Below the pieces are notes generated by a model. The model saw only the letters and a program-made list of their open reading frames with translations. It did no database searches and was not told the origin of the DNA. A DNA stretch of 64,000 nt, from sequence record MT708547.1; one strand, given 5' to 3'. The translations under genes and the position numbers were made by a program. This document shows, one piece after another, positions 19,889-64,000 of the stretch (its first letter is position 1; every line of letters begins with the position of its first letter).

Positions 19889-20199
19889 GGCCCCTTAGCT
19901 CACGCTTTGGTTAGAGCAGACGACTCATCGATAAATGGTGACTTTCACAAGTAATTGTGATTGAAAAACTGGATGAATTCAGGGAAACCTTAACACATAA
20001 TGGTGATGGCAATCCTGAGCCAAGCCCAATAAGCGTATTGGGAAGGTGCAGAGACTAGGTGGTTCAGCACGATCTTGCTGTGTAATACACCAATAGCGTC
20101 CGGCATCCTTATAGGATGATGATATAGTCCTTTCTATAATGAAAATTATAGGTAAAAAGAATCGTTTGGTACTGTGTTCGACTCACAGAGGGGCCACCA
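19889..20199 (+). tRNA. ileX: tRNA-Ile2(CAT), ileX-like, split by a group I intron (exons 19889-19928 and 20160-20199)
   Basis: Spliced sequence GGCCCCT-TA-GCTC...GAGC-A-GACGA-CTCATAA-TCGTT-TGGTA-CTGTG-TTCGACT-CACAG-AGGGGCC-A-CCA, close to enterobacterial ileX (GGCCCCTTAGCTCA...AGGGGCCACCA). Confidence 0.88.
19929..20159 (+). mobile_element. group I self-splicing intron, 231 nt, ORF-less, probably IC3-like
   Basis: P AATTCAGGGAAAC (19976), Q AATCCTGAGC (20011), R GTGCAGAGACT (20046), S GATATAGTCC (20121); P1 exon UCAU pairs with GUGA giving a U-G splice-site pair; P7 GACTA/TAGTC; GNRA loops in P2 and P9; ends in G. Confidence 0.9.
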
Positions 20200-57844: not shown

Positions 57845-60607
57845 ATGTTAGACTTTATGCTAAAAAGTGAACTATCACATACTATTGGGTATAGTATTGC
57901 AGTACTAATCGTATTCAGCTTTCTGTTTGAAAAAATCAATTGGCTATTCAAAACCAATATCTATAAAAAGTATTATAAAGTTAAAAGTTTTGACAGACAA
58001 TTCTTTTTGGGTATAATGTATACATTAACATTATATTGTAGTGTATTTGAAATTGGATTTGTACTGGCTGATTTACCATTTACTTTGTACTTTTTATTGT
58101 ATACAGTCTTTGTTATACCATTTTCTTTGTATATTTTTTGTACTAAAGTGTTCGATAAAATTATTGAATTCCGAAATAAACTACCAGACTGATATGGAGT
58201 AATATAAATGATTGAGTTTATATTCAAAAGTGATTTCGCATATAGTGTTGGGTATTGTATCTTTATTGCTATTATTTTTAATTACTTATTTGAGAAAATT
58301 AATTATTTTTTTAAGACTAATATTCACAAAAAGTATTATACAAACAAGAGCAGTAAAAGAAAAAACATTGAATTCACTCTGTATATTAGTACTATATATC
58401 TGGTAACAATTGAACTTCCTTCAGTACTAACTGATAAAAATGTAACAATGCTATTTTGTGTATATAGTGTAGTGATTATCTTCTTTTGTGTATATTATAC
58501 AATCAAAGCATTGAATCAAAAATTAACTGAATTCCATAATAAACTACCGGATTAATTAAAAATGAATGAATTTCTACGAAGTGAACTATTGTGCTCAGTA
58601 CTACAATGCTTTTTGTTGTTATTCATTGTGTACCATTTGTATATTTTAGTACTATGGTACTTTAAACGTAAATCGTATTTGACATTATGGCAAAACAATA
58701 AGTTAGCAGTTCCATTTCTTACTACTACAACAATAGCTTATGCTCTTTCCGGGATTTTCCTGTTTCCAGTAGATGATCCTGTAATGCAAGAAAGTGGGAT
58801 AGCAATTGCTAATCTTATTAGATCACTGTTCATTAGTGCATGGTTTTTCTTTGTATTAATCAGGTACTTAGTGCGTTTACGTACTAAAATCGAAGGGGCA
58901 TTCTAAAATGCTGGAGTACATTAATCTGTTTGATACATCATTTGTTATAGTTAGTACTTATTATATTTGTAGTACTATTTTTTACTTTCTGATGTGGTTC
59001 TTTAAACGTAAACTGGATAACTTCATTAAGCAATATTCGTTACAACTGGCATTACAATTGTATTACTGGATTGGATTTGGTTTAATGTATTTGCATTACT
59101 ATTTTGTATTATATAATATCCGTGAAAATAATACATTTATGCTTTATATGCTACAAATTATCGGTACTACAATCTATGTAGGTTATCTAATGTCGATTGT
59201 ATTGTCAAAATTAAGAAACAAAATCCCTGATATGAGGAATTAAAAAATGACATATATTTTTATTGCATTAGCAATGTATTACTGGATTTCGTGGACTGGA
59301 TATCTCTTTGCATTGAAATCTTTTGATTATTTCAGTGCTTCCTGTAAAGAAAGTTGGGGGTGGCATGTATTAGCAACTTCGTCAGTAACATACTGTGCTT
59401 ATGAAAGTATTACAGATAAAACATTCAATGATATAGTATTAAGTACAGTACTGATGTATTTGTGGGTGTTTGCATTTATTGTTCATATTTCACCTTTAAT
59501 TAGAGATAAAATTGTAAAATTTCATAATAAACAAAAGGAAAAACGTGCATGATCCTTACATTAAATTTACTGACATTTTTTAGTGTATTAACGTGTTTAA
59601 TCTTTATTGGAAAATTCTTTTGTGTTAAAATAGCAGAGAAGATTTATGATTCATGGGAAAATGAAATGGCTTTATGGGTTCCTATATTCTGGACTGGCAG
59701 TAATGTATTTTTAATTCCAGCCTGGATTGGTGCAACAAAGGAAATCGTCCCACTTTTTTTATTCAGTGCAGTATTCAGTGCTGGTTTTTGTTTAATGTAT
59801 GGGGTATTTGCATTGATTGTTGCATTAGTACCTGCATTAAAGAATCTGCATGTAAAAATTAAACTCAAGAAATCACAGGGTAAATTATGACTTACAGAGA
59901 TTATTTTTGTATATTCGAATTACTGGTTTTTACTTCAGGTAGTTTAGTATTATTATTGTATTATTTTTGTGTTGAGCCTTTTTACAAATTATTAAAACCA
60001 AAAACTGAAATGGGTGTATTTTGTTTATTTCAGTTTATGTATTACTATTTTCTGTCTATTCTTTCTGTTGTTGTAGAAGTAATTTTCGGAGGATTTGTTA
60101 ATGCAGACAAAATGCCGTCATACGAGTTGTTTACAATCTTCAATGTACTTATGATTGCTTTAATTGTGTTCGTTTCAATTCTTGCTGGAATTTACAAATT
60201 TTTTGTATTCCTTGGTAACAAACACAATGATATAGTACTAAAACGAAAAGGAACACTGACAGATGAACGTAATTGAAATAATTGTAGTTGCATACCACAT
60301 TTTAGCAGTACTTCTTATTTTATCTGTTCTCGTGGATTATGCATTAGGATTTGATAAGCTTAAATTTGTATATCAGTACTTTGATGATAATTTCGATAGT
60401 GATAATCCGGTACATGTATTTCTTGGATTAGAATTCATGTGTTTAATTCTTGTACTGTTTATCCCTATTATCGGTACAGGAGCATCTCTTTTCTTTATTA
60501 CTGCAATTACATTATTGTACTTCGTAGTAATAGTTCTCATTTTAGTACTGTATTCTGTTGCGTATGGAATAGAAACAATTAGAAATAAACGCCTGTCAAA
60601 AAAATAA
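57845..60607 (+). CDS. tandem array of eight small multi-pass membrane proteins (57845-58192, 58208-58555, 58562-58906, 58908-59243, 59247-59552, 59549-59890, 59887-60276, 60263-60607)
   Basis: Each 101-129 aa with about three hydrophobic helices; the first two are clear paralogs (LFEKINxxFKTNIxKKYY...EFxNKLPD). Confidence 0.8.
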
Positions 60608-63318: not shown

Positions 63319-63756
63319 ATGGTTATTTCTCAAATTGATAAAGATTTTGATATCAATATATGCTATATGGAAGAAACCAGTACAGATATCATCTACTCAG
63401 GTACTGAATCATTTAAACCAGACCAAATCATTACAGCAGCGGATAATTGCGTCCAACGTTATTTCAGTACTGAACCAAATAAAACAATCAGAGAACAACA
63501 AAAATATAATACACGAAATATGCAAGAAGTAGAAAAACATAGTAAAAACTTCCCCGGTGGTATGACCGTTAAAGAATTAAAAGAATTAATTAAAGATTGG
63601 CCTGAAACCAATCAGTACGGAGAAGATACTTTAGTCTATATCAGTACTGAATCAGATACGGATTGTACTGTACATTCTTCGTGGTGTTCATCAGTAAGAA
63701 CAGATGATAACGGTGTACTTGTATATGATCTGACACTTGATACAGAACAAAGATAA
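63319..63756 (+). CDS. hypothetical protein
   Basis: 145-aa ORF, the last in the window. Confidence 0.65.
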   Translation: MVISQIDKDFDINICYMEETSTDIIYSGTESFKPDQIITAADNCVQRYFSTEPNKTIREQQKYNTRNMQEVEKHSKNFPGGMTVKELKELIKDWPETNQYGEDTLVYISTESDTDCTVHSSWCSSVRTDDNGVLVYDLTLDTEQR

Positions 63757-63764
63757 TTAAAAAG

Positions 63765-63804
63765 ACTCCCCGTAAAACGTGATCAAACGGATTCTACGGG
63801 GAGT
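63765..63804. terminator. GC-rich inverted repeat (terminator or DNA hairpin)
   Basis: ACTCCCCGTA-20 nt-TACGGGGAGT. Confidence 0.55.
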
Positions 63805-63857
63805 ATAATATATTGGACGATATGTCCATTATAATAGACGATTTAATGGATATAGGT

Positions 63858-63990
63858 GATTCAGTACTGATAATAATGAATAGGAATTGATAAGAATAGT
63901 ATAGTACTAATAATAATGAGTAGGAATTGATAAGAATGATTCAGTACTATTAAGAATGATTAAGTACTATTCAGTACTATTCAGTACTGA
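63858..63990. repeat. iteron-like tandem repeat with six AGTACT sites phased at multiples of 10 bp
   Basis: Units of 40, 40, 20, 10 and 10 nt; AGTACT starts at 63863, 63903, 63943, 63963, 63973, 63983. Confidence 0.85.
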
Positions 63991-64000
63991 TATGCCACTA

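Follow-up and report, generated by a model that had tools for sequence, protein, structure and literature searches.

A phased AGTACT array next to the predicted left end of the Klebsiella phage Muenster genome may form a platform at a terminus-cutting site

A tandem array of AGTACT sites at the end of the genome record of Klebsiella phage Muenster stops 12 bases before the predicted start of the packaged DNA, and this position makes it more likely that the array helps to mark or cut the genome end than that it starts replication. The explanation we favor, which we hold tentatively and at slightly less than even probability, assigns the array to the outer flank of the left terminus site, where it would serve as a protein platform that positions the cut. 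The observations on which we draw are the position of the array relative to the mapped end, its conservation, its phasing, the uniqueness of the site and a cut word that is common to both edges of the terminal repeat in four phage lineages.

The window, that is, the whole stretch of 64,000 nucleotides analyzed here, corresponds to record positions 282,938-346,937, the final 64 kb of MT708547, and its last 1.5 kb is 100% identical to the end of the Muenster record (MT708547.1; 346,937 bp), which represents a jumbo phage of the genus Alcyoneusvirus. The record contains a feature at 1-20,030 labeled 'terminal repeat region predicted by PhageTerm', and according to the genome announcement, the sequence had been reopened so as to match a 20,030-bp direct terminal repeat (DTR) (PMC8407769). 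Because the record was reopened at the PhageTerm DTR, in circular or concatemeric DNA the packaged genome is predicted to have its left end directly after window position 64000. The ends of Muenster were taken from the record and the paper, as a PhageTerm prediction, and those of its relatives were likewise taken from records and papers; according to these sources, Muenster possesses exact direct terminal repeats with fixed ends. Its 20-kb DTR is filled with early genes. The DTRs reported for Muenster, and those mapped independently with homologous ends in related phages, are as follows.

Muenster: 20,030 bp, PhageTerm (record; PMC8407769)
vB_Ec-M-J: 21,525 bp, annotated in the record
BF17: about 20.5 kb, PhageTerm (PMC10059673)
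fEgEco12: 20,993 bp, PhageTerm and restriction digests (PMC13070987)
fENko-Kae01: 19,736 bp, annotated in the record
CBB: 22,456 bp, doubled read depth and pulsed-field gel electrophoresis, PFGE (PMC5259590)

Between the last gene and the window edge, the following features were found (window coordinates), and the predicted left DTR end, record position 1, directly follows the last of them, just beyond the window.

63319..63756, plus strand: last coding sequence, CPT_Muenster_567, 145 aa, hypothetical (ORF list and record annotation)
63765..63804, plus strand: GC-rich hairpin (fold, inverted repeat and conservation in seven relatives)
63857..63988, no strand assigned: AGTACT tandem array of 10-bp units (hexamer positions and Tandem Repeats Finder)
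63979..64000, plus strand: left terminal box, comprising the last AGTACT unit and a 12-bp word ending in CACTA (record feature, paper and conservation)

The sequence-only reading from which this study started had placed the end of coding at 63756, a 10-bp GC-rich inverted repeat after it, and AGTACT sites at 63863, 63903, 63943, 63963, 63973 and 63983. All of this proved accurate: the open reading frame at 63319-63756 is confirmed by the ORF list and the annotation, the inverted repeat folds strongly, and every AGTACT coordinate is exact. CPT_Muenster_567 belongs to no Pfam family, and its sole PHROG match is a PHROG of unknown function. Farther upstream in the window, at 57845-60607, eight small tandem genes (CPT_Muenster_554-561), annotated as membrane proteins with 2-3 passes, are probably a paralogous family. 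The hairpin has arms of 10 bp each (63765-63774 and 63795-63804; 13 nt at 92% when extended) and a 20-nt loop that encloses a 3-bp inner stem, and the corresponding RNA fold has an energy of -26.7 kcal/mol (z -4.7). Among the seven relatives the stems are invariant and the variation is confined to loop bases. The tail is A/U-rich and has no clean U-run, and a simple terminator scan of the plus strand did not call the hairpin at 63765-63804. It is probably a transcription stop or an RNA-end structure for the upstream genes.

The array itself holds six AGTACT palindromes in a span of 126 bp, with degenerate units of the AAGAATG type between them, and Tandem Repeats Finder resolves nested periods of 40, 20 and 10 bp. 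The purine-rich repeats that had been described around the sites are indeed present, as degenerate 10-bp units belonging to the AGTACT array itself. The phasing arises by construction, the array being a tandem repeat, and not by chance. The placement of all sites on roughly one helical face holds for the four proximal sites, which are spaced by 10.0 bp, and fails over 120 bp, because an exact 10.0-bp spacing drifts by about half a turn over this distance relative to 10.5 bp per turn. The repeats had also been described as running to the window edge; instead, the array ends at 63988 and the final 12 bases are a separate conserved word, and neither the record from position 1 onward nor the contiguous RaK2 sequence is repetitive. 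No hexamer is more frequent in the window than AGTACT (193 copies versus 13.8 expected), which occurs 949 times in the whole genome. The array is the densest 130-bp AGTACT cluster of the 346,937-bp genome, with 6 sites versus 4 in the next best, which bears out the earlier supposition that it is the most special AGTACT site of this phage. The further supposition that it is a site of protein assembly is probably correct. A resemblance of CAGTACTG to a LexA box was also considered and was dropped, as the array yields no CTG-N10-CAG arrangement.

We compared all seven available Alcyoneusvirus sequences, namely Muenster, RaK2, K64-1, RCIP0023, OU509535, KP13-7 and phiKp_21. Each of them has the array, bounded by the same hairpin on one side and by the same terminal word on the other. 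Its presence in all seven genomes rules out an assembly artifact, a concern that had been raised along with the original observation. The number of AGTACT copies ranges from 4 to 7 and their arrangement differs too; the distance to the cut nonetheless equals 8 mod 10 for every AGTACT site in all seven genomes (138, 98, 58, 38, 28 and 18 bp in Muenster; 98, 48, 28 and 18 bp in K64-1). This constant phase could reflect slippage in 10-bp units as well as selection. In the seven-genome alignment, inspected by eye and uncounted, the AGTACT hexamers are intact and the 4-nt spacers are variable, and the left terminal box is invariant.

Conservation of the terminal sequence extends beyond the genus. 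The last 22 bp before the cut (CACTA/AGT junction), including the AGTACT at -18, are identical in the Asteriusvirus genomes 121Q, G17 and SD-2_S15, and the left terminal box of vB_Ec-M-J shows one or two differences from that of Muenster. Apart from these 22 bp, just one element, of 140 bp, can be aligned between the genera in the 1.5-kb non-coding region. A search of IMG/VR with the terminal-box pattern returned RaK2 and 121Q only and added no diversity. The position of the array at the left DTR boundary is conserved in four phage lineages. Strict 10-bp spacing is an elaboration of Alcyoneusvirus: AGTACT sites of the other lineages have spacings of 21, 23, 35, 42 and 44-60 bp, which are not helically regular, and the nearest AGTACT lies 18-27 bp from the cut, a distance that is not constant.

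Both DTR edges were extracted from Muenster, vB_Ec-M-J, fEgEco12, fENko-Kae01 and CBB, five phages that represent four lineages, and were read from outside to inside. RCTA or RCTAA is present at the edge in all 10 DTR boundaries, and AG comes next in 8 of the 10. The inward reading gives the same word at both edges; the word is thus oriented, one strand carrying it at the left edge and the other strand at the right. The left junctions are of two non-alignable types, one ending in GATATGYCACTA (Alcyoneusvirus and Asteriusvirus) and one ending in CCCCTTCCGCTA (fENko-Kae01 and CBB), and the right junctions are a third sequence type. Because these types cannot be aligned with one another, the common CTA (frequency 0.012 in Muenster) is not explained by descent from one sequence.

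The two edges can also be compared in their flanks. Within 140 bp outside the left edge, AGTACT occurs 6, 2, 3, 3 and 4 times in the five phages, and within 140 bp outside the right edge, 1, 0, 0, 0 and 1 times; the left flanks thus total 18 sites in 700 bp, versus about 5.5 expected at the high density of the DTR itself. The left cut of Muenster has its nearest AGTACT at 18 bp and the right cut at 28 bp, distances that differ by one helical turn. The 28-bp boxes that span the Muenster edges are both unique in the genome, and the left junction box has no second genome match at up to 7 mismatches; the bare core, by contrast, has 168 copies, so that specificity must come from the flanks. The right edge has a repeat array of its own, situated as follows.

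Record 20072-20139 (L011 72-139), just outside the DTR right edge: 5.8 copies of the 12-bp unit ATTCTGTACACT

The core of this unit, TGTAC, is one change from AGTAC, and its copy number varies among the relatives. Short-repeat arrays are therefore present on both outer DTR flanks, in 10-bp units on the left and in 12-bp units on the right, and the left array, ending 12 bp from the cut, is conserved together with the cut. Inside the left end, AAGTCG or AAGTCT is found at +13 to +18 in Muenster, vB_Ec-M-J and CBB (three lineages); this word may mean that the left end is recognized on both sides of the cut.

The beginning of the DTR has further features that merit description. A perfect consensus sigma-70 promoter (TTGACA, 17 bp, TATAAT) is located at record 272-300 and is followed, at record 300-1290 (L010), by about 1 kb that contains no ORFs, is 92-94% conserved in relatives and looks structured; an Rfam search of record 1-2000 gave no match. 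The 13-bp palindromic word AATGATTCTCATT occurs there in both orientations (record 787-905, 1073-1097, 1306-1324 and 2422-2446; L010). It has Fur-box arms, the best 19-bp Fur consensus matches of the genome cluster in this region with 3-4 mismatches, and several copies directly precede TAC and AGTACTG. The AATGATTCTCATT copies may serve as iron-regulated early promoters, as a decoy for Fur or as an operator of the phage.

Several other explanations of the array have to be weighed. The array might be a loading center or high-affinity sink for a putative AGTACT reader that acts on early transcription or on the marking of the early domain, in which case it would stand at the upstream edge of an AGTACT-dense domain and would lie near the terminus for the sole reason that the early region is the DTR; we regard this as possible but unlikely. 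The distribution of the hexamer speaks for it: AGTACT density is 70 and 87 per 10 kb in the DTR versus about 25 elsewhere, an approximately 3-fold difference, precisely at the DTR right edge it drops from 17 sites per 2 kb to 4, and the array is the densest cluster of all. So does the placement of AGTACT in sigma-70-like promoters, at -8/-7 from the -10 hexamer in 28 of 304 and at -27/-28 in 13. These fixed positions suggest that the putative reader is probably linked to transcription as well, which keeps the loading center in contention. However, the array lies outside the DTR, so that virion DNA carries the left early-region copy without it; the density changes stepwise, with no gradient falling off from the array; our sigma-70 scan found no strong promoter in the array or adjoining it and its count was not above that of shuffles; a search for ParB_N (PF02195) in six frames of the whole record gave no match at E up to 0.1, so that no ParB-type protein was found; and the last unit of the array is fused to a terminal word that is conserved across genera. 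As for the promoter positions themselves, where AGTACT lies just upstream of the -10 hexamer the following G supplies TG, as in an extended -10 (examples at L010 1205-1265 and 1445-1490), and the second position abuts the -35 hexamer. A quite different explanation is that the array is a neutral variable-number tandem repeat, an abundant word amplified by replication slippage in a gene-free spacer. The nested 40/20/10-bp periods are typical of slippage, and near-identical phages differ in copy number by multiples of 10 bp; nevertheless, we consider neutrality improbable, because the array is retained in seven of seven relatives, AGTACT clusters in the same outer-left flank across lineages whose flanks cannot be aligned, and, as judged by eye, the hexamers have stayed intact while the spacers have varied.

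The sequence-only reading had itself interpreted the phased sites as a replication origin or a parS-like center. An iteron-type origin has one argument in its favor, the clustering of phased repeats in a non-coding region, and appears very improbable. There is no DnaA-box cluster (one match, 1 kb away, versus 0.5 expected per 3 kb), the IHF consensus is absent nearby, and an AT content of 0.70-0.82 versus the genome mean of 0.68 reveals no distinct AT-rich unwinding element; the flanking ORFs, which have no Pfam family and match only PHROGs of unknown function, include no recognizable initiator. Moreover, the units are of 10 bp with a 6-bp palindromic core, unlike direct iterons of 17-22 bp, and the phage has UvsX, gp32 and other recombination and replication genes of the T4 type. 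GC skew, which had been proposed as a check, is uninformative here, its cumulative curve being a featureless, monotonic ramp that follows gene orientation, without an inflection at the array. The parS-like interpretation agrees with the clustered palindromes and, for the ParB-parS type, lacks its protein, since the genome gave no ParB_N match. We find it scarcely credible that the array acts as a weak promoter, or as an UP-like element, from which transcription would cross the junction and enter the right-hand DTR copy: two sigma-70-like matches, with 9-10 of 12 positions, do overlap the array (63847-63874 and 63887-63914), but the number of matches does not exceed that in shuffles (5 versus 4.2), indels in relatives shift or abolish the matches, and a perfect consensus promoter is available 272 bp downstream, inside the DTR.

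We therefore return to the platform at the terminus-cutting site, for which the following course of events can be envisaged. In replicating concatemeric or circular DNA, the order would be the last gene, the hairpin, about 130 bp of phased AGTACT sites, the 12-bp word ending in CACTA, the cut and the 20-kb DTR. A phage DNA-binding factor would bind the phased AGTACT sites cooperatively; this factor might be a so far unrecognized small terminase subunit or, alternatively, the putative genome-wide AGTACT reader acting as a specificity factor. The factor would then place the T4-type large terminase, or an accessory nickase, to cut after RCTA, 12 bp beyond the last AGTACT unit, and a second cut would be made at the DTR right edge, where the same core word is inverted and is again accompanied by an external repeat array. 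Protein binding, the identity of the binder and a requirement of the array for cutting are what we infer from the arrangement of the site. The inverted cut word, together with arrays on both outer flanks, would suit a duplication of the DTR by staggered nicks and strand displacement.

Several findings count against the platform. The array and the DNA packaged with that end fall on opposite sides of the left cut, 122 kb separate the terminase gene from the site, no more than one AGTACT accompanies the right edge, lineages outside Alcyoneusvirus keep neither helically regular spacing nor a fixed distance to the cut, the 8 mod 10 phase could stem from 10-bp slippage alone, and the presence of AGTACT at fixed positions in sigma-70-type promoters points to a transcription-linked reader. 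The large terminase is of the T4 type (record 223604-226273; L056 202-2871; 889 aa); residues 294-349 form a LAGLIDADG domain that precedes the T4-type ATPase match, and this segment may be an intein or a homing-endonuclease insertion. The gene immediately before it (record 222937-223617) is a candidate for the small subunit. A search for a small terminase of the T4 gp16 type (PF11053) gave no match, and Pfam and PHROGs searches of the terminase-adjacent ORFs yielded nothing informative.

It is also conceivable, albeit decidedly doubtful in our judgment, that the AGTACT mark and end formation are coupled: the reader would nucleate on the array and recruit a site-specific nickase or terminase that cuts 5'-RCTA/AG-3' on opposite strands at the DTR edges, and strand displacement from the two 3' ends would then duplicate the DTR. 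If true, this scheme would represent the Watson/T7-type duplication scaled up about 125-fold, with no genome copy wasted. The T4 terminase contacts the late sigma factor, and by analogy, a variant of the coupled scheme can be proposed in which the reader is a phage sigma-type factor; such a reader, if true, would explain the occurrence of AGTACT at fixed promoter positions.

The site can be set beside known systems. Dunn and Studier in 1983 and Chung, Nardone and Hinkle in 1990 reportedly described in T7 an exact terminal repeat, outer short-repeat arrays (SRL/SRR) and a hairpin-forming inverted repeat nearby. Muenster similarly has an exact DTR, short tandem arrays outside both edges and an inverted repeat near the junction, and in both phages the ends are made at fixed nucleotides. 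Unlike T7, however, Muenster has a repeat of 20 kb rather than 160 bp and a large terminase of the T4 type rather than the T7 type, and its repeat unit is a 6-bp palindrome that also occurs about 950 times genome-wide. The pac site of P1 is said, following Sternberg and Coulby, to consist of seven TGATCA/G hexamers on both sides of the cut that are read by the PacA/PacB pacase; P1 packages by the headful mechanism, producing permuted ends, and its hexamers work through Dam methylation. Muenster resembles P1 pac in having a cluster of a short, near-palindromic hexamer beside a predicted terminase cut and differs from it in that the ends are exact and the cluster is on one side only. A P1-type pac site was thus rejected for Muenster, since headful packaging with permuted ends does not agree with the exact ends given by the records and papers.

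Small terminases also act at sites with phased, DNA-wrapping repeats, such as the R-sites of lambda cosB with IHF and pacL/pacR of SPP1. The Muenster sites, like those of lambda cosB and SPP1 pac, lie about one helical turn apart beside a predicted nicking site, and with its length of about 130 bp the array could wrap around an oligomeric ring, as at small-terminase sites. In contrast to lambda cosB and SPP1 pac, Muenster has no small terminase recognizable in a gp16-type search and no IHF site, and in contrast to lambda cosB, its array is on the non-packaged side of the left cut. With plasmid iteron origins and parC/parS the array shares phased short repeats in a non-coding stretch; it differs from them in that Muenster has no initiator family, no DnaA-box cluster and no ParB_N, is a lytic phage and carries the array at the genome end.

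To our knowledge, the recognition and duplication of very long exact terminal repeats, such as those of T5 and SPO1 and the 20-kb repeats of RaK2-like phages, is an unsolved problem. In the literature on the RaK2-like clade that we examined, only the repeat lengths are reported, and neither the array nor the cut word nor the AGTACT excess turned up in our literature searches. What the present analysis contributes is a cut word defined at the nucleotide level, the conserved phase and the four-lineage comparison. In each of the four lineages a single nucleotide can be given as the position of the cut, and the terminal features supply a simple rule for finding the correct start of an arbitrarily opened RaK2-like genome record. 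The inverted cut word, the unique 28-bp boxes and the flanking arrays together provide a concrete, mutable target for packaging studies. In addition, the array ties the AGTACT excess of the clade to one defined site, and the reader protein could be recovered by DNA pull-down.
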